A stretch of DNA of 63,657 nt, counting the filler, from Dimorphilus gyrociliatus (lineage: Eukaryota > Animalia > Annelida), in the NCBI GenBank assembly GCA_904063045.1. It is 5 parts of 5 records of this genome, joined end to end, with 100 filler letters (N's around TTAATTAATTAA, not from the genome) between each part and the next. Parts side by side here need not be neighbours in the genome. Positions count along the whole stretch, not along the records: positions 1 to 20,693 come from CAJFCJ010000188.1; 4 more parts are not named here. One strand, written 5' to 3'. Each line of letters opens with the position of its first letter. Position 1 is the stretch's first letter. Shown piece by piece: positions 1 to 18,300 of this stretch. Under the pieces are notes generated by a model. It was not told where the DNA came from. It saw only the letters and a list, made by a program, of their open reading frames with translations, and made no database searches. The translations under genes and the position numbers were made by a program.

Positions 1-3000
1 TTTACAACTAAAAAATCATTCTATGGAATGAATAATTCGACTTTAAATCAAAATGATCATTTCTACGGTATATTACAATACTATTACGAAAAGGTTTGGA
101 GATCAGTTTGCGAAGAGAATCTTAATTATGGATTTTTAATGAAAGTTTGTCAAAAGTTATCTTTTAAAGGAGGTTACATTTTTGTCGATAGAACAAGTTT
201 TTCATTGAAATTATCATATCAACCGAAAATCAAATTGAAATGTAATCATTTCAAACCAAAATCTCAATGTTTAACAGAATGTAATACCATAAAAAGAGCG
301 AAATTTGTACGGAAAATCTTCAAATATAAGCAGTAATCATTCATTTTTTTTATCGTTTCTTTCCTTACTTTTGCTGTTCTAATCTGGAACTTTTAAGCTT
401 TAGATATGTTAATGATTCGTCTCATTTTCTAGTGAAATGTACTAATGAACCAATAGCGGGTTAATTAATATTCTCTAAGTTTTAGTAGACGAATTAGTCA
501 ACTACCAGTTTCCCTTTTCAGCTTGTAGAGAAACGGATGTCAATATCAATAATAGATGTTTTAGGCTTATTTCAACTGCAAAGACCTTATATTCTCCAAT
601 TACAGCTCAACAATATTGCCTTAGAAGAAATTTAACAATTCCAGATGCAATATCTGAAATGGATAGATTTACAGTATTTAAATATATTCAAACAGTAGAA
701 AATGAATTTCTGGATGCTGATAGAAAAGACTATTTATCATATAGATTAGTTCCAATTATTCAAGGTATTCAAAACAGCATCTATTCAATTCAAAAAAAAT
801 TCTATCAATTGGCATTCTTCCAGTTTTTCATAAAGTTTACGATAATAAAGGAAACATTAATTATTTAACTCAAGATGAAACTTTACTCGTTTTTAAAGGA
901 TCTCTAATTGAATACACTTTCAAGTAGATTATATACTATCCGTTGAAGCAAAACAAACAAAAACACTACTTGAATTCTCTATTTACAGAGATCCCTGTTC
1001 AACAATCAACTTTATCAAGGCTAAACAATTTCATCAATTGTTTATTAAAACTGTAACTGACTGTTTTACTGTACGCTTTAGCTCTGATGAAACTACGTTC
1101 ATCTATAAGAAAAATTATTATTCCGGCGTCGATATTAGTCCTATTTCGTGCACCAAACCGAAATTTCAATCATTTCTATGCGTGGAAGGGAGTTGAGTAC
1201 TAATTGAAAGATAAATAGATCATCATCAATATCACCAACATCAATATCATCATCTTCTTCTAGATTCGTTAATAAAGGAACGAAAAGGAAATCTTCACAG
1301 TATAGATAATAGGAAATTTCAATGCCCATTCAATGCATTTCTTTGTTTTCGATCGGAATATTGCATTAACATAAAAAATTATTGTGACGGAATAAAAGAT
1401 TGTAGAGATAATGAAGATGAAGAAGAATGCAAAGATGACGATATAACGCCAAGATTTATTTGTGACGGAAGAAGAATTAACTTTAATCTTTTATGCGATT
1501 TTATAAAAGATTGCGAAAACGGAGAAGATGAAAAACATTGCTGTAAAATTATTAATAAAGATAAAAGAATTAATCTTTTTTATCCTATTTTTCCATAGTT
1601 TTAGACGAATGCGAAAGAAGGTATATTTTTTTCCTAATTAGATGCTTTTAGAAAACATCCGCTAATTGATATTAAAGAATTGAATTCTCTCTCTTTCTCT
1701 CTTTCTTTCTCTCTCGCACTCTCTAGCTATCTATTTCTTAATATTCAGGTGTGACAATGGACAATGCTACTTTGCTAATGAAACACTTGATGGTGAAAGA
1801 AATTGCTTGGACGAAAGCGATGAGAAATACGTGATTTTTAACATTTCCACTTGTCCTTCTAACTATATCTTTTGTGATGAAAAATGTATTTCGGATAGTT
1901 TTCTTTGTGATCTTAATCAAGATTGCGAAGATGGTTCCGATGAGGGATTGCATTGTCCATATTTTCAGCAGGATAAATGTAAAACAGTCATTAAAGGAAT
2001 AGAGACAAAACGATGTTATTTAGAATATAATTCAATGGGAAAACTTATCTCTAAAGTACATGAACCTTTAACAACTTTAAAATACTGCCAAGCAGATACA
2101 AACTGTCATCTTGGATATTATAAATGTGCAAAAGTCCATTATTGTATATCAATTCAGCAAGTTTGCGATAATGTTCCTCATTGCCCTGAAAAGGATGACG
2201 AAATTGAATGCGGTTAGTCTAGATAGTTCAATAGATAAACGTTCATTCATTCAATAAAGGTCAAGGACGTTTGTCATCAATAATTAATAAGATTTTAAAT
2301 TTATTCATTAATTATGATATTTAGAGCAATTCTATCCTAAAGGATTCTTTAAGTGTCACAAACAACATCTTTTCTTAAATCTAAGCCAAATTTGCGACAG
2401 AATTATTCATTGTAAAGAGGGAAGTGACGAAGAATTTTGCAGCGAATCATTAATTTCGTGCCCAAAATTTTGTAATTGTCAACCAAATTACACAATGGAA
2501 TGTAGACAACAAAATGATTTATCTTTACAAGAATTCCATCATAAAATGCTATTTTTAGAAAATATTCAAAAATTATCGTTAAAAGCTAACAATTACAAAA
2601 GTATTTCAATTCTGAAAATTCACTCTACAGACGTATTGGATTTGCAAACTATTGTATTGAAATTTCCAAATTCTTTCCATATAGAACTTATTAAAAATAA
2701 TTTAAGATCTTTACATTTTACTGCAAATATTGCAAATTTTTTAAATGTTCAATATTTAAGTATAACTGAAAATATGAATATTACAATTAATAAACAGTCA
2801 ACTTTAAAACATTTTCCATCACTTTTATATTTGAATTTATCAAAAAACAGCATTGATTTTATTCCAGTTGATCTCTTTCTTAATCTGTACAAATTAAGGA
2901 TTTTAGATTTAGCATTTTGTTCAATTCGTTCAATTGGTGACGTTGATGCATTCAAGTTTTTACAAAATTTACTTGTTTTTAATTTTAGTAAAACGGATTT

Positions 3001-4295
3001 TCCACATCAAATCGTCTCTTTTCAAATGTTGAATTATATGAAAAAATTACAGTATATTTATAGTCCTATATTCAAATTATGCTGTCTAGCCAATGAGAAT
3101 TATGAACATCTTGAAGAATGTCAGCCGAGCAGATCTTCCATTCATTCTTGTAAGGATCTATTGGCGTCGGACATTTTGAAATCAATTGTTAGTATATTCG
3201 GTATATTTGGTTTTTTTGGCAATATTCTGTCGTTATACATTCACATTTCAACCAATAAGAATGGATCGAAATATTTCTATATAACTCTATCGTTTGCCGA
3301 CTTTTGTACAGGAGTATATTTTCTAACATTAGCCATAGTTGATAGATATTTCAGAGGAACCTATATAGAACACGATCTGAAATGGAGAAATAGTTTCCTA
3401 TGTACATTTATCGGTTGTTTTTCCAGTTTTTCAGTTGTAGTATCAACTCTTAGCATATCTGCAATAACGATTGAAAGACATTTTTATATTTCGAAACCAT
3501 TTGAAAAGTTTCTAACCTATCGGAAAAAAGCTATTGTCTGTATGATATTTTCACTTTTTGGTGTTTTATTAGCAGTTATACCAATTTATCTTTACGAGGT
3601 AATTAAGGAGAAGGCAAGGAAACTTAAGATAACATTCTCTTTCTCTCTTTAAATAGAAATACTACTCGAGTTCCTCAATTTGCTATTCTTTACACATAAG
3701 AAGCGAAAAAATCTCTGGTTGGGTCTATTCATTCATTATTCACGGAATTTTTGCATTTCTCTGCTCGCTCTTCAATGGAGCATTATATATTCGTATTATG
3801 AGGATTATCGTTAAATCTAGCGTTGTTCTCTCAAAAGAAGAATTCAATAAGAGAGTTGGAACTATTCTAAGAACAGCTTTTATAGTTACTTTATCAAATA
3901 TTGTTTCGTGGCTTCCTATTTCAATTTTAGGTTTTATAGCCCTATTTACAACATTAGATATCAGCCACGACTCATATAATACAATAGTTGTTGCTATTTT
4001 ACCTATAAATGCGTTTCTAAATCCATTTATCTATTGTATTGTTCAATTTAAAATTGTTTTGAACAGCATATGGAAAAGCAGAGAAAAACTTTTGTACAAA
4101 ATTTTCAAACAAAACTTTAATTTTTGTTTAAAACTTTCTTTTTTTCTTTACAGAAATACAAAAGTAAATGATAAAATTAATGAATACTTTACAACAGGTT
4201 GTTGTTGTTGTTGTTGTTGTTTATCTTTTATCAATATTCAATACAAAGATATATTATCGGCTCTCAGCTCATCATCTATTCATTCATTCCGATGA
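1..4295 (+). CDS. GRL101/LGR-like GPCR (5' partial, multi-exon): SRCR-like + C-type-lectin-like + about 7-8 LDLa + LRRNT/LRR + 7TM
   Basis: 28-336: GILQYYYEKVWRSVCEE...VCQKLSF (SRCR-like). About 530-720: CRETDVNINNRCFRL...AQQYC (CTL-like). LDLa motifs CDGIKDCRDNEDEEEC, CDFIKDCENGEDEKHC, CDLNQDCEDGSDE, CDNVPHCPEKDDEIEC, CDRIIHCKEGSDEEFC. CPKFCNC (LRRNT), LxxLxLxxN repeats, KLCC / SSIHSCKDLL hinge, then TM segments (LSFADFCTGVY, ITIERH, LPINAFLNPFIY). Short GT-AG introns at about 1543-1598, 2214-2325, 3599-3656 and possibly 4094-4153. Confidence 0.85.
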
Positions 4296-6001
4296 AAAAT
4301 ACTTCCAATGTAGTTGCGGCAATGAAACTCAATCTCAAATTCAAGTTGACCAACGCTTCTACTGTAATAAAAATTATCTTATCTGCTTGAAAAGTATCTG
4401 CAAAGCTATTATCTTCTCTCATGAAAATTTACTATCATTCAATGGAGAATTCGATTTGAATTCAATTTACAAACAAGTAAATAATTGAGTAGTGTTTACC
4501 AAAAATTTATATTTTTATAGTTTTTCTATTATAGATATACGATTGCAGCAAACAAATCTACAAACTAAATTATCTTACAATCTCAATGGCAAACAATATA
4601 AATAAACCTAAAGATTTACTTTCATTTGGTAATATTACTAGAAAAATTCTAACAAAGAAAATGTCTACCATTTGAATTTTAATACATTTCCCTAAACAAT
4701 CTATAAAGTCTATTGATTTACCAAAAGAATTCCAAAATGGCGTACAGTTAGGGTAAAATCATTTAACTTTAGGTCAAGTATATTCTGAGGTTAGGAAGAT
4801 ATGAAATTAATGTAAAAGTCATATGTAAAAACTGGTAGGTTAAGCTTATTGAAAAAACAATCACTATGACAAGACTGAAAATTTTTATTAACTTTTTACA
4901 AGCACCTTTGATAAGATAACTGTACTTTTAAGAGATATTATACGACTTTTGCGGTTTGGTTTTTATCTACTATTTGATTGATTTATCCCTTACAAAACCT
5001 TGAACTTTGCTAAATTGCAGTATAATTCTACACCAGCATATTATTTTTTTCTCTCTTCCAGTTTCAATTAAAACTCTTTCTTGTAAAAAAAAATTCTTAA
5101 AATCATCCATTTCAATTTTCTATAAATGGAAAATTGTAACCTACAAAAGTTTACAAACCGTCTAGAGTGGTATGAACAAACCATTAAATCTCACTATAGC
5201 CTTAATACAATATAAAAGTAATAGAAATTTAATAAGATAACTTATTGGATAAGGTTTAGCTTGCTAAAAGGTTCTTTATTATAGTTTTGCTAACTGTGTC
5301 TGTAACATGATGAGTCAAGATTATTGGCTGCTAAATTTCAGCCTATTACTGAGTGCAAAAAATATTAATTATTAGCAAAAAGTTAATGTAGATTATTGAA
5401 TGCAAAAACAAAATAGTTTTATCACCTGACTAGTTAGGGTTAGGGTAAGAAAAAGTCAATAGAAGAGTCCACTCTTTAGAATATTCTTGAGAAAACATAT
5501 TTGTAAATAATTACATCTATAAATTTTTCAAAGAATTTTTACTTTCATTTCAACAATTCAACTGAATTGAGATTTCCATTTTCTTCTAAGAGAGATAAAT
5601 ACTCCAAGTAAATTTTGTATCCGGTATAAGAACTTTTCTTTGATGACTATGCAATAACACGAAATAGAGATTGTTACAATTGAAAGAAAATCATTAAGTC
5701 AATTGTGTAGGTGTTTCTAATGAAGTTAATCTGATAATGGAAATTTAATGAAATGGATGAGACCTACTGATAAGAAAAAAAATGGCGGAAATGGGATTAA
5801 AATTTGTATTTCTTTGTCTTTTAAAAAATTAATTAGAACCTATTAAAACTTATCAGTAATAGTTACAATCTTCTTTCAAAAGAGATAATAGTATGATTAA
5901 ATGAAGCATAAAACAATATTCTTATCTTTCACAATATGAATATATAAATGGTGTGTTCCGATGATCATCCGTTACAGTAAAAGGAAAAAAATCATTAAAT
6001 C

Positions 6002-7949
6002 ATGAAGATTCTTTTACTTTCTCTCTGTAAGTTGATTAATTTTATATTTTTCATTAAATTCATAGATCTTTATATTTATAGGTTATTTTCTGCAAGTTGT
6101 ATCTTTGTCTTACTCTTTCAAGTGTCCGATTGATGGAGAATCAAAACCGATTGATGGAACTTATAGAGATCCTCAATCTTGCCGTTCCTATTACCAATGC
6201 GTAAATGGCACTGCTTACTCTCATAGTTGTCCTTTTGGTCTTTTCTTCAGATTTACAATGGTTGATTGTACATTTATAACATGCGTTGAACCTAAATATG
6301 CTGATTGTCCAAATTATGATAAGAGTGTATCTTTAATTGATAAAGAAAAACCAGAGATTTTAGAATGTAAACCTAATGAAAATGATTTTAACGTTCCGTG
6401 TTACAAAAATACTGAGGAATGTTTGGCAAATTCAAACGCAACTGTTGCTAGTTCAACAGATTGCGGTATCTATTATCATTGTCAAAATGGTTTTGGTTGG
6501 CCTCAGCAATGTCCTCCTGGCTACTTTTTTGATCCAGTAGTCAATTCAAGAGAATGTACGGTAAAACTATGCGTTTTGGCCAAAGATGCCAATTGCCCTA
6601 TTGATGGAAATTGGTCCGAATGGTCGGTGTGGAGTGACTGCGAACCAAGTTGCGGAGGTGAAGGAATTCGAACTAGAAGAAGAGAATGCAATAATCCTCC
6701 TCCATCAAATGGCGGTCGTCAATGTCCCGGCTTAGCGATTGAAGAGGAGAATTGTCAAACTCCCAGCTGTCCATCTGACGAAAATCCTGCATTTATGGTA
6801 TCATTGCGAGCGAATACAACATTCAGTGAAGAGAAAATCGAATGGAGTTCGGTTGATTTAAACAAAGATAACCTATTTAATCCAATGACAAATGAATTGA
6901 ATATTAAAGAAAGTGGAGTATATTTCTTTACGATGACTGCTGCAATGAGTGGCGAAACTGGAACGCATCTTAGCTTGGAAAATGTTGGCATTAGAATAGA
7001 TTTAAAAAAGGATGACAACAAAATAAATATCAATCAAATAAGCAGAAGTGGCTTATATCAACTTAGTACGTTATTCAAACCTCACGTTAAACAAACATTA
7101 CCAATTTCAACTTTAATTGGCAGCAATACTGGAAAAGATACATCTTGGCTTGGATTCAAATATCCAACAAATAATTATCTATTTACAGGTTCGGTTGGAA
7201 ATTCTCATCATTACAACGACTATCTAAGATTCAATCTTGTAATAAGTATGAAAGGATTTAGAATGAGAGATTTCAATACTAAATTCGCTAATTTAGACAC
7301 TGGAATTTATTTTATAAATTTTGGCGGCGGTACTATTTCAAATGCTCAACAAAGGATTTCTGTTAATGAAAACTCAATTAATTTTCCATATGCAAGAATT
7401 ATAAGATCAAAAAATCAAACATCTAGCCCTGATCAATTATCTAGAAGTTTTATCAGTAGATTGAGGCCTATGACTACGTTAACATACCAATTATACGGTA
7501 GTTATAATTCTACGATTGGCGTACCTTCCTATCTTTTGGCGTTTAAATTGAACGAAAGTCTACCAGTTCTCTTTGTAAGCGAAAGTGTTGGATTCGAATC
7601 GATTTGTCCTGGTTTAAAGACTCTTGTCAATTTTAATACAGTAATGGAGGATACAACGAGATCGTGGGATAATTTAAATAGATTGTATAGAGTACCAATA
7701 ACTGGTACTTACTATATTGACCTATCAATTGTTGCCAGAATGAATAAAACGTTAAAAGTTGATGTTGAAGTGAACAATATTCAAAAATTTCATCTATTAA
7801 AACTAACAAATGACCATACACAACCGGAAATAGTATCAAAAGGAGGATTAGTACAAATGGATAAAGGTGATATTTTAAGAGTAAAATATACTGGTTGTTT
7901 AATAGCCAATGATATGATTTCAACAATGTCAATCTTTTTCGTACCTTAA
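6002..7949 (+). CDS. Secreted protein: signal peptide, 2x chitin-binding CBM14 (peritrophin-A), TSP1, about 3 tandem C1q-like domains
   Basis: Exon 1 (6002-6026) plus intron 6027-6081 gives in-frame MKILLLSLCYFLQVVSLS. CBM14 motifs DPQSCRSYYQC...CPFGLFF and DCGIYYHC...CPPGYFFD. TSP1 WSEWSVWSDCEPSCGG...RRRECNNPPP. C1q-type motifs SGVYFFT, TGIYFINFG, PITGTYYIDL and GLVQMDKGD. Confidence 0.85.
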
Positions 7950-8284: not shown

Positions 8285-9190
8285 ATGAATGAGTCATTAA
8301 AAGATATTTGCTTGAAAAAAATTCTAACAAATCTGGAATATCAAAAAGAACTATGCTTAAAGAATCACTTCTGTATTCCTCAATACACTTCTCAATTGAT
8401 TTTTAATCTCTTTAGAAGCGATAAACGATTTATCTCCTCTGATTTAGACGAAAGAGATAAACAATTGGAATTCTTCTCATCTGAATGTTCAACTATAACA
8501 ACTTTTGAATTGCAAGGTCTCGAAGAACTTGGATTTAAAAGTTTCAATTTTCTCAATGAGCATCCTATATCAACATTGAAATTGATTAAATTATTTAAAT
8601 TCAATAGTGTTATTCAAGCTATAAATCCAATTTTCATTCAGGTTCTTTATATTCGAGGTTACAAGGGAAATGTTTATAATCTGAATAGTTTATCTGTGAT
8701 GAGAAATCTGAAGGAATTAGGCCTAGTTGAAATGAATATAAAATATTGTCAACAATTTATCAACTCGTTAAAAAATCAAGAATATTTGAAAAAAGTTGAA
8801 TTTAATAAACTTTATTCAATGAATGAATTGAATTTTGAACAAATTTTAAAAGAATTATGTATTTTAAATAGAATAGAAACATTAATTATAAAATCACATC
8901 AATTAACAATTCAACATATTCAAACTTTATTATCTTTTAAAGATTCTCTTCAAAATTTAACGCTTCATTGCGATTTTATAAACAATGAAAACAGGTATGA
9001 ATATTCAAAACAAAATCTGTTCAATCAAGATATTTTCTTACCAAATTTAAAAATGTTGGATTTGGAATTTTCTACAGAAATATCTGCAATTTTTTATACA
9101 GAACTGATTGGTTGTTTGATAAATTTAGAAAATATTTGTATTAACCTCAACAAAATGGAGGAGAATTGTAAATTGTTTAAAAGAAATTAA
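8285..9190 (+). CDS. ZYG11/ZER1-like BC-box plus RNI-type LRR protein, probably truncated at the C-terminus
   Basis: N-terminal ESLKDICLKKIL fits a BC-box (S/T-L-xxx-C). IPQYTSQLI resembles the Cul2-box region. LKELGL, LKKVEF, LQNLTL and LKMLDL LRR motifs follow. No ARM domain is seen, and the ORF ends about 210 bp before a Tc1 insertion. Confidence 0.55.
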   Translation: MNESLKDICLKKILTNLEYQKELCLKNHFCIPQYTSQLIFNLFRSDKRFISSDLDERDKQLEFFSSECSTITTFELQGLEELGFKSFNFLNEHPISTLKLIKLFKFNSVIQAINPIFIQVLYIRGYKGNVYNLNSLSVMRNLKELGLVEMNIKYCQQFINSLKNQEYLKKVEFNKLYSMNELNFEQILKELCILNRIETLIIKSHQLTIQHIQTLLSFKDSLQNLTLHCDFINNENRYEYSKQNLFNQDIFLPNLKMLDLEFSTEISAIFYTELIGCLINLENICINLNKMEENCKLFKRN

Positions 9191-9402: not shown

Positions 9403-10756
9403 GTATAAAATTAGCGACAGGAAAATTGGAACACCTCAAATTTTATACGCCAAATATTTTCATTATGAAAAAAGATTATTTTTTTTTCAATGTTTAATAA
9501 TAGGTTAAAGTTGCAATTTTATATAAATTGCTTTAAAACAGCAGTTAGGTTAATTTTTACATATTTTTTTTATAGAAGTTAAGATAGTTTTCTCATCTTT
9601 TTTCTTATTTGGCTGTGCAACATGTTTTTTGGAACAATGTTAAATTGTTGAATATTTTGACTATTTCTGTATGTGCCCATCCTCTCTTTCTATGGCCCAC
9701 TTCCTCATATTTCTCTCTCAATTTCTTCTATGACAGGAAGAACATCTTCCACAATGAAAGAGCTACAGTTTTCTGCATTCAGCCTTCTCCTTATCCTCCA
9801 GACTTCAAATATACCATCAGAGGTTATCAATCCCCTCACCAATACTCCACCTCTCCCCATATTTTTTGTCACCCTGAAGTCCTTTTCACTATTGCTAGTC
9901 CATGTCCCAAAGTCATCAGTGAAAACCTGGCTTCATCAGTAAAAATAACCCTAGACCAGTCTAGCTTTTGCTAATAATTTTGAGGTAGTATTCTTTTCTC
10001 CACTTACAATCTATGGAGGTGAGATCAGTCCTTTGTCTGACTCTTTTGTGGTTGAAGTTTTGTCTTTTCAGCTCCCTCTGAATTGTTTTGATGCTTACAT
10101 CTACTTCTAATTCCTTTAATATCTTTGCTGCTGTCACTCTTTGCTTGCTATCTTTCAGTTTGTTCACAATTCTTTTCATCCTGGTTATCTCTCTGTCTGA
10201 AAGCATCTTTGGACCTCCCCTATTGTCTTGTTGTGGTTGCTTAGATTTCAATATGTTACAAACTGATGATGGTGCCATTCCTAAAACTCTTACTGTTTCC
10301 CTTAATTTACCTATTTCTCTATATTTTTTTATTACAAGATCCCTAATACCTTTACTCCACACCGTGATTAAAAAAATACAATATAGATTATATACAGTAA
10401 TTTTTAATATTCAAAAACTAATTAACTTAACTTAAAAAAGGAAATAAGTTGAAAAAATTTTTGTTTGAGATATCTATTTGAATGTCAAACCAGATGTCAA
10501 CTCAATGTTCCAAAAAACATGTCACGTTGGCCAAATAAAGAAAAAATGTGTGAAAATTACTAAAAACTTTTGCTAATAATGTTCACAAAATATTATCATT
10601 TTCTTAAATTTTTTTCAATATTATGTCAATTTAACTCTTTTTTTATATAAATTCAGACAAATACTAATTTGCAGCAAACAAGCAATTTTAACCATTAATT
10701 AAAAGTTGGCCTATCAAAATTTATGGTGTCCACATATTCCTGTCGCCCACTTTTAC
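9403..10756 (-). mobile_element. Tc1/mariner element with long imperfect TIRs and a defective transposase
   Basis: Termini GTATAAAATTAGCGACAGGAA / reverse complement GTAAAAGTGGGCGACAGGAA, flanked by TA on both sides. Inner repeat CATGTTTTTTGGAACA at about 9621 and 10505. HTH ORF at 10362-9961, then a frameshifted WSRVIFTDEARF and GGVLVRGLI DDE start that is truncated. Confidence 0.85.
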
Positions 10757-11053
10757 TATTGAAAGTATTGAAATAAGGAAAATAATTGAAGATAGTTTTG
10801 AACAACAAGACAATTTGCAATATATAATTTTTAAGGATAAAATATTCGAATAAAAATGATACTGACTTATTAAAAAATAGTATTACTAAAGAAAGTTAGG
10901 ACCATAAATTCCACATGGATCATGCTTGAATGATCCTACCCATTAAGATTATAAGGAATCCATTTTGCTCAAATCTTTCTCTACCCAGCTCCTTAATCAT
11001 TTTTCCAACAGCCTTTCGACAAATATCCAATTTTTCACTGATTCATCTATAAG

Positions 11054-11260
11054 GGATACTACAGAAAACGTCCACAAATCACTGCTTTTACCCTAACCCT
11101 AACCTAGCCCTTAGCTGTACCTAACCTTTTCCATTACCCCTAACCCTCATAGGAGATCCTCCTAACTACAAATCATTTGCTGTTTTCTTTTGCCTAACCA
11201 TTTCTCAATCCAAATTTTTGTCTTGAAATTTCTCATTTGTGGACGTTTTCTGTCGACCCC
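11054..11260 (+). mobile_element. 207-bp Mutator-type MITE, subfamily A
   Basis: TIRs GGATACTACAGAAAACGTCC / GGACGTTTTCTGTCGACCCC. 9-bp TSD ATCTATAAG / CTCTATAAG. Internal CCCTAACCCTAACC. Confidence 0.9.
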
Positions 11261-11532
11261 CTCTATAAGACATAGTTCGATCTTTCCTGATCATTCATGT
11301 AGGTTACTTCCCTCTTATGGTCTGTTACAGTTGTCTGTGGGCAACCAGATTTTAGAATGTTTTCTTCCTTTTTTATGTTCAAAAAACCTCCACCCAATAA
11401 ATATTTTCAGATTTCCTTTTCCATTTTATCATTAATCTTCTATGAGTAATAATAGCTTGAAATGCATTTATTTTTAGTCTAGAGAACATAGAAATCACGA
11501 GTAGCCAAAGGCAGCAGAGATTAAACATTTTA

Positions 11533-14178
11533 TTAATCGTTAGTCTTAAAAGGATGGAAATAAAATCTATCAAATGATTCGGAATTTTTCACTGGTATTT
11601 GCAAACCTCCTGAACTCGATTTATACCGTTTTAACAGGGAATTAACCGTTTCCATAATATAGGATAATGATTCCTTATGTGCATACGTTTCCATAGCAAT
11701 AACAAAGCATCTGATAAACGGCGAACCTCTTACTGGATTTCGATATGATCCATATTCTAATAGAGAAATTGCTATTAAAAAACGATTAAAATAAAGAGAG
11801 GATTTACTGACTTAGTACTGTGGAGAATGCCATATAAATATCTGCCTTGGGATGAACGTATCTTTCCCCAGTTGTTGCATAATTATCTGTAACAGCATCC
11901 AACTTGTCAACCTGAAGATTTGAAGTATCTTTTGGGTGAAATTCTTGATCTGAAAGATGTATTTAGTGTTGTTAAACTATCTCTTTTAATAGGGAAAGGA
12001 AATATTCTTTATTAATAAAAACCTCCTCTACAACAGTTGAAGAAGAATATCTTTGGTTTATGAATAAGAGAGGGACAATTCTTTCCGTCAAATTCTTCGA
12101 CAAACCTATCATAAAGTATGTATTCTTCATTTTCTAGAAAGAAATGATGTTCATTCCCATGAGTCATAATAAAAAAGATTAAACATCCATAATTGTCTAA
12201 AGTATTTCGAAGTTTTATAACATTTTCTTGGAATTGTTGTGTAGTTAAACAATGTTTCCAAACTTCATAATCGTAGTTAAGAATTTTAAATATTCCAATT
12301 AAATTTCTCACATCCATCTCACTTCCTGCTCTATTCTTTATTGTGTTAAAGATAACTACCTTAGTCTTCTTTAGTCTTGTGTCGTAGGCAGTCTAAAAAA
12401 TTGAATATAATATAGAAAATGTATGACACTACTCAAAACAATACGTGATCTCTCACCTTATCAGTTAGAACTTCAATAGTGTTGAGAGTTGTATCGGTTT
12501 TCACCGTAAATTCAATTTCTGCTCTTTTTTCTGTGATATTAAAAAGAGTGTTGAAAAAAGTTTTTTTTGAATATGAAATATAAATGAATTTACTATAATA
12601 TTCATATAGAGTATAAGGATCTTTTGGCAGTTTGTTTATGCCAACATCTTCCATTGATTTCTTCAATGACCAATACACTTTATCATCCAGATTTTTAATG
12701 TATTCAACAATTGAAGATTGGCTATTCTTTTGAAATAATAAATCTTTCAACAAATCGAAACGTATCGGGGTGTTCTCATCGTTCGGGCCAGTCTTTAAAT
12801 TGGCGTTTGTTACAATGTATTGTGCGCAGATAAACCTTTCAAATTCACTGGAAACGTAACTTAAATAATTTCCCATTCCTAAGGAATTGTTGATGTGAAA
12901 GCTATCTATACCGTCGCTGCAATTGTCCAGATCACTCGTCAAAAGACCATACATGTAATTGGAATTTTTAATTATTTCTGTTGTTTCTATAGGCCTTCCA
13001 AATATTAATTTGTTTATAGTCTGTATTGAGCAATTGTCTATAACACTGTGATGAAAGTTTCCACTGCATTGAACATTTGCCTTGTCCCTGAGAATGTCTA
13101 TTGCTTGCCAGAAGACGTTTTTAATTGAAAATCTGCCTTGTTCGCTTAGATAGCAGATAAGATTACATAACAAAGGACTTGTACAGAGATTAAATAAATG
13201 TCCATTCTTTATTTCATTGTAAAGTTGACAACTCTTTGCCGGAGTGTCGTTGTTTGTCTCTCGAAAGTATTTTTGAAAGAATAAATTAACATTTTCACTT
13301 GAGAATCCTTTAATTTTAAAGATTTTATCAAATATCTCCATAATCCTTTTTCCAGAACTATTTCTCGACCAAACCATAATTGGAAATTTATCTGATAAAG
13401 TTTGAATTATGTCATTAAATATTTTATAATTATCTTCCTGTAAACAATTTAATTCATCAATTAATAAGATGATTTTACGGCGTACGTAAAAGCATTCATT
13501 CGATAGAAAATACTTAAAAAGATCTCTAGTAATCCAAGTTCCTTCTCCAAAATTTTGATTATAGATATTATCCATAATATCTTCACTACTTTTATCAATT
13601 TCTTCAATATTAATCTTTAAAAGTACAAAATCATCCTGAAATATTTGTTCTTCAACACACCATGAATATTGCATTTTGAACGAATGATAAGTTTTCCCGA
13701 ATCCCGCTTCTCCTAAAAATAGGAACTTTTCCCTATCGTATTTAATTTCATTAATGAATTCCATATCGTTATCATTATATATATTATCAGGATTTTGGAG
13801 AGATACTACTCTCAAAGGTGTATAAATATTTTCAAATTTGATGAGATCACTATTTTTTAAAAATTGATGTTTTAAAACGATTTCCAATTTCTTTCTTACT
13901 TCATTTTTAGTTTCAACAATAAATTCAAAATATAAGGTAAAGATTTTCTGATTTATGTTTCTGGAATAATAGTCATGAGAGTGAATCATCACCATAAAAA
14001 ATTTGTTTATGGGAAGAGAAAGAGTAATATCCAATATTCGATCATTGTTACCCTCGATATCTTTCAAGTTAGCCATACCATCTTCCATTAAATGGATTCT
14101 GATAAAATCTCCAGAATGCTCTATGATTTTTTTTATTTGATCTTTAAAGAAAACTAACACTGGATTTTTCTTTGACAT
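11533..14178 (-). CDS. NACHT (NLR-type STAND ATPase) fused to a C-terminal caspase (p20+p10)
   Basis: Exon 14178-12457: Walker A FLFLGEAGFGKT, Walker B ILLIDEL, LCTSPLLCNLIC. Phase-0 intron 12456-12393 (AAG|GTGAGA...TTTTTTAG|ACT) joins in frame to RAGSEMD, FIMTHG (His) and PKIFFFNCCRG|D (Cys). p10 has PKADIYMAFSTV, RNPVRGSPFI and QIP...RFYF. Stop at 11533-11535. Confidence 0.85.
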
Positions 14179-14448
14179 TGAAATGAATTTCTGGGATAAT
14201 GTTATTTTCAACACTCAGCTTTCTCACCTGCTACAAAAACCATGCTTACAACCATCTCAAAGCATATTTAACCCAACTTTAGAAGTGTTTATAACCACCC
14301 TCTCATTCTATTGTAAGATTAGCTCTAAATTTAGCCTATTTAATTCAGTTCATTTCTGTATTTAACAATTTTCAATGAGTAGTTACATTTAGATGATAAA
14401 TTCAAACTAGTTTTACTAGGTTAGTGCTACATTAAAATAGTAAAATTG

Positions 14449-14655
14449 GGGGCCGACAGAAAACGTCCCCAAATGAGATTTTTGAAAGCAACATTTCGGA
14501 TTGAAAAATGGTTAGGAGGGGTAAAGTAGCTTTTGATTTATAGTTAGGGGGGTTCCATCTAAGGGTTAGGAGCAATCAAAAAGGTTAAGGAGAGACAAGG
14601 GCTAGGTTAGGGTTAGGGTTAAATCATGAATTTGGGGACGTTTTCTGTCGTATCC
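14449..14655 (-). mobile_element. 207-bp Mutator-type MITE, subfamily B
   Basis: TIRs GGGGCCGACAGAAAACGTCC / GGACGTTTTCTGTCGTATCC. Perfect 9-bp TSD GTAAAATTG. Internal TTAGGGTTAGGGTTA. Confidence 0.9.
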
Positions 14656-15390
14656 GTAAAATTGCCATCTTCTTCAGTCTTTCTTCAGTATGAAGAACAT
14701 TGAAGAGTTCTCAGAAATGGATATTGAGTGGGTTTAAAACCAGTTCATGAAAGTAGGCCCACTTCCTATTTAGTAAATTTATGTTGTAACATATTTTCAT
14801 CATTAATTCAAATTTAAAACTCCCAGTGTTGTATTTTTAATTATTTTTCACCGGTTTTGTCAATAATATAGTGTATTTCTTAGATATATTCAGTCAATTT
14901 ATTGATCTTTTCTCTCTGCTTGTTCGTGTTATTTGTCTGTTTGTCTGTTTGTCTGCTTGTCTGCTTATCTGTCTGCTAACTAATTCGTTTGAAGTGAAGT
15001 TTAAAAAAATTTGTGTCTTTGTAATTATCCATCTTCAGTTATAGAATAAAAGTTCCACTAAGCCTATATCATTCTTGCAAAAATGAACAATAATACTAGT
15101 GCTGACCTCTTTTGGCTTCCTTCCGACTTATAAAATATACATTTTGATGTTTCTAATATTAAGTTGAATTATTAGAATATTATTTATTGATGAGACTCAA
15201 CTTTATCAACAAAGGACAAGTTTGAACATCTTGCAAATTCAAAATGGATGGTGTGAACAATTAGTGATAATATATATATATATATATATAACATAGAGAA
15301 TATATAACAAAAGTGTGTCACGTGTCCAAAGGTATCAAGTCCAAGGACAAATATAAATATCTATTGGCTTATTTAGCTCAATTTGAATTC

Positions 15391-18300
15391 TTAAAAAGAA
15401 CTTTGAAAAAGTTGGCAGGTTATGTAATCATTTAAATCTACTTCAGTATTAAATATAAACTTAGATATAACATTTTCAAAATGAACATACTTTTTCTTTT
15501 TACAATGAAGGGTGAGATATGTTTTTATCTCTATGAAAGTAGATGAACATTCTTCATCTAAAATATGCCCGTCATCATTTTGGATAGTTTCCCTAACTAA
15601 ATCCATTAATAACGTTTCATTCATATTCATTCCATCCATTCTTAGGATTAGTGGATTAATCATGTTAATCTTTAAAATTTCTTCATCTTCCACTGTAAAT
15701 TCTAAGAAGGACGATTTTGATCTAATTGGGATAAAAGCGTAGAAATATTTGTCAAACACGCTACAGATAGTTGAAAAATGACTTTGGGAATTGTTTAAGA
15801 TGGTTGTGCTTCTTCTACCTGAAAAGAAAAACTAGTTTGAAAGAAAGAAAGAGGGACAAGAAGGAAAAATATCTTTACCTCTATTATTGAATTTAAAAGA
15901 ATTTTTAGCATTAGGCCAGTAATTTTTTATTAAAATTTGTGTAATATTAACCGGAAGTGGTAATGTTGAATCAATTACACCCAATGTTTTTATATTGCCA
16001 ACTTTGTCAGATGAACTAAACGTCAATTGAGTTGATGTCAACTCCAACGAAAAATAACTCCATTCCAAGCATTTAATCATTGATAGAGACTCGCTAAATT
16101 CAATATTTTTATATTCAGGTTTTAATAATTCTAAAACTGATTGATTGAATGAGTCGTGTCTCACTGAGCAAAAGATGTCATTTTCATCTTTAAAACTAAT
16201 TAGAAGGGAAGCGGAACAAGAGCCTGTTTGTTCACTTTTTACTTGATATCTATAACTTGTAAATTTATCAATTTCTTTATAGTGGAATTGATAATAAATG
16301 ACGTAATTTGTGGATTGGATGCTAAAGATTTTTTCCTTATCCTCTTCTGAAGAAGTATAAAAGATAATAAATAGATTTATTGACAATTTTAACTTACTTA
16401 AAGTAAAAACATCAATGAAACTAATACCAATATAAATTCCTCCATAGATTTCCGATATTTCCAGTTGAACTGAATGTTCTACAAAATTATTTGTATAAGT
16501 CTTACAAATTCTTTCAGAGTTTTCCAATAGATGAATTTGTTGCTGAGGGGCAAAGCTCCATTTGACTCTGACAGTTTTTATATAGTTGACAGAGAATAAT
16601 CTGTAATTTAAAAGAAAAAAGAAATAGAACAATTCTCTTCCCCCTACTTCTACTCTTCCATATTCTCTTCCCTTACCTGTTAGTGATGCAAATCTTTATA
16701 GGTCGCGATGGATACGCAAATGTAACATTTATAAATTTCCCTATACAATCAGTAGAACAAGTTGGTTTCCAACTCTTAAGCATCTCACTCTTCAAAGCAT
16801 CTTTACATGGAGAAGAACTGCCAGACGAGGCTGAACATGTCGCTCCTAAATTATATGAAGCAATATTCTCGTAAATGGAATCGTCAGTTGTTGCATCATC
16901 TGCAAAATCAGAAGAAAAATAAAAGTTAAAAAAAACTGTCTACTTTATATAATTGCGAATTTTTACCATCATAGGCAAATACTAAAATTGAGTTAAATCC
17001 CATTTGGAAGTACATATTAGGAGTTATCTTTGGTTGTAGATGAATATGATCAACAGATGTACCTTGACCATCTTCCATCAAAAAGCAGGTTTCATAAAAA
17101 TTCAAATGATATTCAAAACTTTCACCTTTTCCAAAACTTATATTTATTATTTCTACTTTGTTAGAATTAGCATAAAATCCTTGATTTAGGCAAAAATATA
17201 AAATGTTATAGCCCTTTTTAAAATTAACTTGAATCCATTCAAAAGGGCATGATCCGAGACTGCAATCTGCTGACCAATCATTCATAGTTACAAAGTTTGA
17301 TTTTATTGCATTTTCACAGTGATAACTTAGAGTGTCTACATCGGCTTGATGAGAAGATTCTTGGCAACTTGCCTGGTGTTTTTCATCCGCAATATTTATT
17401 AATTTATGGGAATCTGTTTTTAAAAAAAGTTTAATTACGCTAATGGAATTAAATTGATGTATTAATTAAATAGTTAATTTTATTACTTGATAAGAATCCA
17501 ATTGTATAAGATATTTCAAAGAAATATAGATATTGTAAGAACAAGAATAACTGAAGTAGCTTTATCATTTGGTCTCTTCTCGTACTTCTTCAACTGACTC
17601 TGAAATGAAATTGTTGGAAAATGTTAGAATATCAATAACATTTTTTTCTCTTTTGTTTAACAGCAACACCAGAGAGAGTTGTTTTACCTTTCTCCGATGC
17701 GGCGGAAAATATCTACAAATCAATGTATATGAATTTGTCATTCACATTTCGCAGTTTGATACAGCGACACAACTCAAAGTTCCTTCCAGGCTGCACAGGT
17801 CATGGCTACATTTCATGTTGTTTGTATTAGCAAATGCACTTGAAAAGACTTCAGAATCAAATCGAGTAAATGCACCTTTATCCAAGAATCACTCCAATTC
17901 CTTAGGTACAGAATAAGAAGTAAATGGAGTTGCTACAGATCCAGAAATAATTGTTCGAATCATAGAAGGAAATAAACTTATATTTACCAACACATTACTG
18001 AGTATTGCTACTTTAATAAGCAGTTTGATCTACTTTGGTTTGTGAGGTGATTAAAGCCCCTGATCTTGGTATGATAAGGACATATCGGATGTGACAGATA
18101 ACTTCTGCATATCCATGTTTTTCGCTAAACTTAACCTAACCGTTGCCTACCAAAGTCATTCTTGGATAAAGAATATTTGCATCACATATATAAATAAGTC
18201 AAAGGAGAAACAAGATTTATAACAAACACGATTAATCTTTTATAGCAGTTGTATGTATCTTATCTCTGTCAGTATAACTGTATAAAAGTATTGACACAAG

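Follow-up and report, generated by a model that had tools for sequence, protein, structure and literature searches.

Introduction

To our knowledge, the STAND NTPases of animals (Apaf-1, CED-4, NLRC4, NLRPs) and caspases have always been described as separate proteins bridged by death folds. Recruitment of caspases by known animal NLRs occurs in trans via CARD or PYD adaptors, and reconstitution of the death-fold bridges underlies the induced-proximity model by which caspase activation is explained. Here we describe a gene of the marine worm Dimorphilus gyrociliatus (assembly GCA_904063045.1) which encodes in a single chain two components that in other animals belong to different proteins. The gene lies on the minus strand at 14178..11533 of the window analyzed, a stretch of 63,657 nucleotides joined from five parts of this genome, and falls within the part taken from CAJFCJ010000188.1 (positions 1 to 20,693). 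It is an expressed in-frame fusion of a NACHT module and a caspase, found on a spliced transcript contig. A reading made from the sequence alone, referred to below as the original prediction, had proposed this fusion as a possible one-protein apoptosome or inflammasome.

Similar to animal NLRs (NLRC4, NOD2, NLRP3 and the invertebrate DEATH/DED/CARD-NACHT proteins), the worm protein has a predicted death-fold-like N-terminus followed by a NACHT nucleotide-binding domain and by helical and winged-helix domains. It differs from them in having a caspase instead of leucine-rich repeats (LRRs) and a serine in place of the winged-helix histidine. A lineage-specific expansion, as in many invertebrates (PMC3879445), is a further likeness. 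The apoptosome and inflammasome systems (Apaf-1/caspase-9, CED-4/CED-3, Dark/Dronc, NAIP-NLRC4/caspase-1) likewise combine a STAND NTPase with a caspase, and by analogy a logic of proximity dimerization is likely shared. However, those systems consist of at least two polypeptides joined via CARD-CARD contacts, whereas the worm protein links them covalently, and a CARD or DED prodomain is missing from its caspase. Additionally, the worm NTPase is a NACHT and not an NB-ARC domain as in the apoptosome platforms listed, and its oligomer is a proposal.

Outside animals, the principle of a protease-carrying NLR is already known (PMC8851545, PMC8195603). Fungal NLRs bear a protease domain directly, whereas mammals use adaptors (PMC8851545), and a caspase is among the effector domains fused to bacterial STAND NTPases, the named caspase effectors being N-terminal (PMC8195603). 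Fungal S8/NACHT/WD40 and CHAT-containing HET-Q2-like proteins, as well as bacterial caspase-like and trypsin-like STAND fusions, thus resemble the worm protein in having protease and NTPase in one chain. In the fungal S8/NACHT/WD40 proteins, however, the nucleotide-binding oligomerization domain stands between the protease and C-terminal repeats, whereas the worm order is death-fold-like domain, NACHT, caspase, without repeats. The fungal and bacterial proteases are of the S8, CHAT or distant C14-clan kind, whereas the worm protease is an animal caspase and C-terminal.

Within animals, the nearest cases come from another phylum. Amphioxus has a cDNA-verified TNFR-caspase as well as LRR-caspase and Death-caspase 'short-cut' hybrids, which were interpreted as direct links from recognition to cell death (PMC2575513), and in these too a caspase is fused to an upstream receptor-type module. 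The text of that paper contains no NACHT-caspase combination, and only its supplementary files 5 and 7 mention 'Caspase', in other combinations (PMC2575513). Surveys of animal NLRs, covering sponges, cnidarians, annelids, molluscs, amphioxus and placozoans, give death-fold, TIR, HEPN, glycosyltransferase and other domains as NACHT partners, and the caspase protease is not among them. The sponge, placozoan, amphioxus and apoptosis-network papers contain no NACHT-caspase fusion either. A 'Caspase' column beside NACHT in a cnidarian NLR table was considered as a precedent and rejected; it is read as CARD, pairs with ZU5, and the accompanying text names the caspase recruitment domain. A literature search found no paper with a NACHT and caspase-protease chain in animals, in line with the expectation of the original prediction that the architecture is not widely annotated. 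As far as tested, a C14A caspase C-terminal to an animal-type NACHT behind a death-fold-like domain is new; no database-wide co-occurrence search was made.

Results and Discussion

NACHT and caspase exons are spliced into one transcript

Positions 14178..11533 of the minus strand form a single gene of five coding exons encoding 796 amino acids, as listed below in transcript order.

14179..14270, minus strand: 5' untranslated region (UTR), minimum extent; contig colinear with the genome over 12594-14270, in-frame TGA at 14217-14215
12594..14178, minus strand: coding exon 1, amino acids 1-528 plus one base, with death-fold-like domain, NACHT nucleotide-binding domain, helical and winged-helix domains; open reading frame (ORF), Pfam, AlphaFold (AF2), Foldseek and contig
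12531..12593, minus strand: intron 1, 63 nt, GT..AG, phase 1; contig joint 12530/12594, in frame and stop-free if retained
12457..12530, minus strand: coding exon 2, 74 nt, a linker of about 25 amino acids (KRAEIEFTVKTDTTLNTIEVLTDK); contig record coordinates 1678-1751 are explained only by this exon
12393..12456, minus strand: intron 2, 64 nt, GT..AG, phase 0, the NACHT/caspase junction; contig joint 12392/12457
12023..12392, minus strand: coding exon 3, caspase large-subunit part, amino acids 554-676; Pfam Peptidase_C14 and phmmer alignments
11950..12022, minus strand: intron 3, 73 nt, GT..AG, phase 1; contig joint 11949/12023
11812..11949, minus strand: coding exon 4, inter-subunit linker and start of the small subunit (PKADIYMAFSTVL); contig piece, Pfam profile gap 130-171
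11757..11811, minus strand: intron 4, 55 nt, GT..AG, phase 1; contig joint 11756/11812
11533..11756, minus strand: coding exon 5, caspase small-subunit (p10) part, with TAA at 11535-11533; Pfam, caspase-3 and CED-3 alignments
11236..11532, minus strand: 3' UTR, minimum extent; contig piece 11236-11756, the contig stopping where an interspersed repeat starts

Transcript evidence comes from X1, a public run of 2017 whose kind is not on record and which was compared with 10500-15500. X1 contains 85% of the sampled words from 11400-14300, and a single X1 contig of 2,780 nt spans 14270..11236 with 0 mismatches in five pieces that sum to exactly 2,780 nt. The four joints of this contig (12594/12530, 12457/12392, 12023/11949 and 11812/11756) read CT..AC on the plus strand and hence GT..AG in the direction of the gene. 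Because all four introns, and also the intergenic stretch 14675-15342, have a depth of zero in X1, the run acts as RNA at this locus. Its study and year differ from those of the DNA runs that contain the locus.

As predicted, a 64-nt phase-0 intron (12456-12393) joins the NACHT and caspase parts; the mismatch-free contig crosses this junction at 12457/12392. The other two predicted introns, 12022-11950 and 11811-11757 (both GT..AG), are also spliced out. In contrast, the predicted 574-codon exon has to be corrected: the contig removes an additional in-frame intron of 63 nt (12593-12531), leaving 528 codons and one base followed by a 74-nt exon, and the 817 codons of the three-intron splice become 796. 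All introns (55-73 nt) agree with the published median of 66 bp for D. gyrociliatus (PMC7854359). With the G+C content of the window at 29%, which is also that of the D. gyrociliatus loci compared (0.29), stops are expected at 0.082 per codon, or about 1 per 12 codons, and an open frame of 528 codons would arise by chance with p ~2e-20. The ATG at 14178 is taken as the start because the in-frame TGA at 14217-14215 sits within the 5' UTR; the N-termini of the paralogues line up with this ATG as well.

It is very improbable that the locus instead has a truncated NLR gene next to an independent caspase gene, or that the fusion is an artefact of the assembly or the contig. Such a reading could draw on the in-frame TGA within intron 2, which would end the NACHT protein in an unspliced message, and on RNA evidence that is an assembled contig from a run of unrecorded kind. 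However, the contig reads across the junction of exons 2 and 3, the shorter flank of which still measures 74 nt, and the transcript ending at this TGA that the original prediction had named as a counter-case left no sign, as no X1 contig covers any intron. The genomic arrangement is complete in DNA run X2 (2020; it may be the assembly source) and partial in three further runs of the same study. Additionally, the caspase is complete yet has no start codon of its own. Its frame opens right at the splice acceptor of intron 2, immediately after a TAG, and the first in-frame methionine falls beyond strand beta-1 and the S1 arginine, so that a complete caspase needs the upstream exons.

The gene has no entry in the protein libraries searched, and a neighboring single-exon gene has no near-identical entry either. 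The remark in the original prediction that such a gene is easily missed was thus apt. Because the gene is absent from these libraries and ORF-based calls would split it, surveys of invertebrate NLRs that start from predicted proteomes can overlook fusions of this kind.

The caspase is complete and of animal type

The original prediction described a complete caspase with THG and NCCRG|D motifs and a p10 subunit, and the residues do align to those of known caspases. The domain spans amino acids 554-796 and has both p20 and p10. Profile and phmmer analyses were made exon by exon. Pfam Peptidase_C14 matches exon 3 with 64.8 bits (profile 12-129) and exon 5 with 29.9 bits (profile 172-232 of 233), while exon 4 fills profile positions 130-171, the poorly conserved linker between the two matched exons. 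The NACHT and Peptidase_C14 matches are colinear, the latter over positions 12-232. The best solved relatives in phmmer are drICE (3sip), caspase-8 and caspase-2, with E of 2e-13 to 6e-12.

The catalytic residues are in place. The THG motif lies at 12164-12156, with the codon of the catalytic His631 at 12161-12159 followed by G632, and the NCCRG pentapeptide lies at 12038-12024, with the codon of the nucleophile Cys674 at 12032-12030. IMTHG of the worm protein aligns to ILSHG, and FFFNCCRG to FFIQACQG, of drICE and caspase-8. The bar in NCCRG|D marks the point where an intron of phase 1 interrupts the Asp codon behind its first base.

The S1 pocket arginines of caspases correspond to Arg179 and Arg341 of caspase-1, and both are kept. 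Arg574 lies in KNRAGSEMD, which aligns to KSRAGTNVD of drICE and RDRNGTHLD of caspase-8, and Arg728 lies in YGSYRN, which aligns to YYSWRN of caspase-3 and YVSWRN of CED-3. The third S1 pocket residue, Gln283 in caspase-1, is Asn in the worm protein. The inter-subunit linker is rich in aspartate (LQVD, KLD, AVTD), and these residues could be putative autoprocessing sites.

The NACHT module resembles that of animal NLRs

The nucleotide-binding features of exon 1 are the following.

13258..13722, minus strand: NACHT nucleotide-binding domain, amino acids 153-307; Pfam PF05729 and Walker motifs
13690..13713, minus strand: Walker A GEAGFGKT (K162); sequence
13450..13467, minus strand: Walker B LLIDEL (D241, E242); sequence

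Both Walker motifs were found where the original prediction had placed them, and the module, intact in both, extends over amino acids ~150-528. The profile check that it had called for returned both domains exon by exon: the Peptidase_C14 matches given above and PF05729 NACHT on exon 1 at 27.2 bits (cut-off 26.7; amino acids 153-307), paralogues reaching up to 58 bits. The sensor-1 arginine is R272, in VWSR. In an alignment of 31 family members, G159, G161 and K162 do not vary, and D241 and R272 hardly do. The absence of repeats was also rightly predicted: the 796 amino acids contain no LRR Pfam match and no LxxLxLxxN-type motif.

AlphaFold predictions cover amino acids 1-528 and 1-101. The model of amino acids 1-528 has a predicted local distance difference test score (pLDDT) of 83 and a predicted template-modeling score (pTM) of 0.82. 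Foldseek matched it to NOD2, NLRP3 and NLRC4 with E of 1e-13 to 1e-12 and also to NAIP5, with 1e-13 to 1e-8 overall, and its ESM Atlas neighbors are animal NLR/NACHT clusters only. This model superposes on active, open NLRC4 (8fw2, 6b5b) with a template-modeling score (TM) of 0.53 and a root-mean-square deviation (rmsd) of 6.7-6.9, and more poorly on autoinhibited NLRC4 (4kxf; TM 0.44-0.45, rmsd 9.1-9.9).

A predicted death-fold-like domain precedes the NACHT

The region before the NACHT, which the original prediction took for a short N-terminal helical region, is indeed helical. It is more than a short region, being a predicted death-fold-like domain common to the whole paralogue family, in which these ~100 residues are conserved throughout.

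13879..14178, minus strand: six-helix death-fold-like domain, amino acids 1-100; AF2 model, VIA-align

The AlphaFold model of amino acids 1-101, built with 23 family sequences, has a pLDDT of 92.9. We searched its fold with VIA-align against 48,161 representative chains. Among the 50 entries listed, the majority are PYD, DED, CARD or death domain (DD) folds, with 72-89 residues aligned, rmsd of 2.6-3.5 Å, and Z of 5.3-7.1, values that helical bundles can reach by chance. They include the PYDs of AIM2, NLRP3 and NLRP6, the DEDs of caspase-8, FADD, MC159 and PEA-15, the CARDs of Apaf-1, CED-4, Dark, NLRC4 and caspase-1, and the DDs of Fas, MyD88 and RIPK1. The best Foldseek match is the Apaf-1 CARD at E ~2, which is not significant, and the domain has no Pfam match. 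The modeled domain is likely a death-fold because this list is uniform, and not because of the Z values.

The caspase takes the place of the LRRs in an expanded NLR family

A phmmer search with exon 1 against 1.84 billion representatives returned 128 matches (31 below 1e-10), the closest with 31% identity. The top ten, and 18 of the 20 looked up overall, are D. gyrociliatus proteins (GCA_904063045.1) or Logan ORFs; the Logan matches with fetched contigs come from runs SRR23372229 and SRR23372216. Judged by these matches, the NLR expansion appears only in D. gyrociliatus and in these runs of one organism. Homology with the relatives covers the N-terminal ~100 residues and the NACHT, to about amino acid 510. 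In long relatives of 1,400-1,800 amino acids (P0001, P0017, P0031), 26-41 LxxLxLxxN-type motifs occur in runs with a spacing of 28-29 residues, and shorter relatives are followed by a same-strand gene with faint LRR matches.

Sequence comparison places the gene as a derived member of this death-fold/NACHT/LRR-type expansion, with the caspase in the place of the LRRs and joined at a phase-0 intron exactly on the domain boundary. The original prediction had the effector moved to the sensor end of the protein. This holds insofar as the caspase occupies the LRR position of the paralogues; the N-terminal place of the adaptor or effector, however, was not vacated and is still occupied.

The NACHT and LRR parts of the family are often separate, adjacent gene models on the same strand (L004, L005, L006, L008 and L009, from D. 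gyrociliatus and SRR23372229), and other members are single proteins of 1,500-1,800 amino acids. Either some of these models are wrongly divided or the family truly has one-gene and two-gene forms.

The position of the caspase bears on a further explanation, in which it replaced the LRRs as an integrated bait, a sensor decoy as in plant NLR-ID receptors. Pathogen caspase inhibitors, or proteases that target caspases, would bind or modify the caspase, and the released NACHT would let the N-terminal death-fold signal. Domain-position logic favors this reading: the caspase stands exactly in the sensor position of the paralogues, and the N-terminal domain conserved with all of them leaves the normal output end intact. 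An intact active site would also fit the trapping of mechanism-based inhibitors. On the other hand, the catalytic dyad, the S1 pocket and p10 are all conserved, which goes beyond the strict need of a bait and speaks slightly against it, if at all. Neither a pathogen nor an inhibitor is known for D. gyrociliatus, and we are not aware of an animal NLR that carries such a decoy. The case for a bait is one of inference, and we regard it as unlikely; that the gene would be a convergent animal counterpart of the plant NLR-ID receptors is a little less likely again.

No caspase was found in any of the 128 relatives by phmmer with the caspase of this gene (E<=10). Similarly, tblastn with the caspase against the surroundings of 11 paralogous NACHT genes (152 kb, 10 loci) gave chance-level matches only, while the caspase of the window was recovered as a control at 96-100% identity. 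A word-indexed protein search with exon 1 had no match, and with the family alignment it found only one fish NLRC3-like protein and one unnamed ENA NLR, both without a caspase family.

Another reading is a young chimera, functionless or only regulatory, in which exon shuffling within an immune cluster rich in repeats and quick to duplicate joined an NLR deprived of its LRRs to caspase exons. Its product would be transcribed, but neutral, decaying, or a dominant-negative partner of paralogous NLRs or caspases. The gene is a singleton, with no counterpart in the 128 relatives or the 10 loci, interspersed repeats lie on its flanks with a Tc1/mariner fragment adjoining, the winged-helix histidine is gone and the pentapeptide is atypical. 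Additionally, the genome paper reports immune families as local lineage-specific duplications (PMC7854359). Against this reading speak a frame of 796 codons that is intact over four introns at 29% G+C, where a stop is expected every ~12 codons, the presence of all catalytic and nucleotide-binding residues, and clean splicing of all introns at appreciable contig depth. We consider a young chimera of this kind improbable.

A proposed mechanism of activation in cis

The account that we favor, with moderate confidence, is a fusion NLR gene as described whose caspase is activated in cis by the NACHT. Activation of the caspase through NACHT oligomerization is plausible. In the resting state, the NACHT module would keep the protein monomeric. 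Nucleotide exchange would then permit oligomerization, and the oligomer would crowd the C-terminal caspase domains, leading to their dimerization and to autoprocessing at the Asp-rich linker. This would be induced proximity as for caspase-9, caspase-1 and caspase-8, yet in cis, with no bridging CARD or DED. Once active, the protease would cut after Asp (the S1 arginines are kept, and the change from Gln to Asn may alter specificity), and the outcome would be cell death or an immune output. Because the protein is without a repeat sensor, the trigger would most likely come from LRR-bearing paralogues, which might nucleate its polymerization via NACHT surfaces, as NAIP does for NLRC4. Alternatively, the LRR-bearing paralogues might recruit it through the common N-terminal death-fold domain.

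Several findings weigh against activation in cis by the fusion protein. No orthologue or paralogue of the same architecture is present among the 128 relatives and the 10 loci, the Pfam NACHT score is barely over its threshold (27.2 versus 26.7), and the support from transcripts is a de Bruijn contig and not one long read. The N-terminal death-fold, the usual output of such proteins, is kept, and the caspase stands where the input, or sensor, usually lies. In the pentapeptide, NCCRG differs from QACxG by the replacement of the conserved Gln with Asn and of Ala with Cys. Finally, the column of the winged-helix histidine holds Ser, the worm protein reading YVSSEFERF where the family consensus is FIHxxFQEYF.

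Active caspases with a non-Gln pentapeptide exist, such as Dronc with PFCRG, so that NCCRG need not predict inactivity; it may instead shift the P1 preference. The winged-helix histidine contacts the ADP beta-phosphate in NLRs, and several paralogues lack it as well (Asn, Asp or Tyr). By analogy to NLRC4, its loss might weaken the ADP-locked autoinhibition. The missing histidine and the superposition of the model on open NLRC4 together give a hint of weak autoinhibition, predicted conformations being unreliable evidence.

A natural single chain of a NACHT and a true caspase would allow the induced-proximity model to be tested in a minimal form. Bypass of the adaptor step would then be open to animals as it is to fungi and bacteria. 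The gene would also be one more example of domain shuffling within an invertebrate family of immune genes that is expanding.

Genomic surroundings

On both sides of the gene, at 11054-11261 and 14448-14655, lie inverted copies of a short interspersed repeat (208 nt, 78% complementary). The right repeat (~226 nt, 14436-14659) shares 97.8% identity with a solo copy at another D. gyrociliatus locus (L005:9982-10205), and more copies occur in L006. The possibility that the gene lies inside one transposon with 208-nt inverted repeats was considered and rejected. Because the arms are just 78% alike, and the second arm matches the solo copy at 97.8%, the flanking repeats are independent insertions of an abundant short repeat. 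Contig depth in X1 is 3,000-7,500 on these repeats compared with 60 for the gene, and the odd joints 11260>14570, 11165/14515 and 14655>11061 probably come from other repeat copies.

Directly downstream of the gene, a 133-residue ORF at 9961-10362 (minus strand) has a helix-turn-helix of Tc1/mariner-type transposases (PF01498, 24 bits, below the cut-off) and is probably a transposon remnant. Further on, an LRR-like ORF of 301 residues without a Pfam match (8285-9190, plus strand) is convergent with the NACHT-caspase gene. It has 29% identity over 118 residues to the start of the LRR gene behind a paralogous NACHT gene (Logan L001:5457-5786), and it may be a remnant or a partner of the usual NACHT and LRR pairing of the family.

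The single-exon ORF of 614 residues at 6105-7949 (plus strand) has D. gyrociliatus relatives with chitin-binding, thrombospondin type 1 and C1q Pfam domains; its closest match, DgyrCDS14696 (57% identity), is one of several paralogues on small scaffolds. Upstream of the NACHT-caspase gene, ORFs of 122, 266 and 119 residues at 15391-17285 (minus strand) are possibly exons of one gene, with no convincing Pfam match. Lastly, consecutive ORFs at 1807-4295 (plus strand) with an LDL-receptor class A domain, LRRs and a rhodopsin-type seven-transmembrane domain form an LGR-type G-protein-coupled receptor gene.

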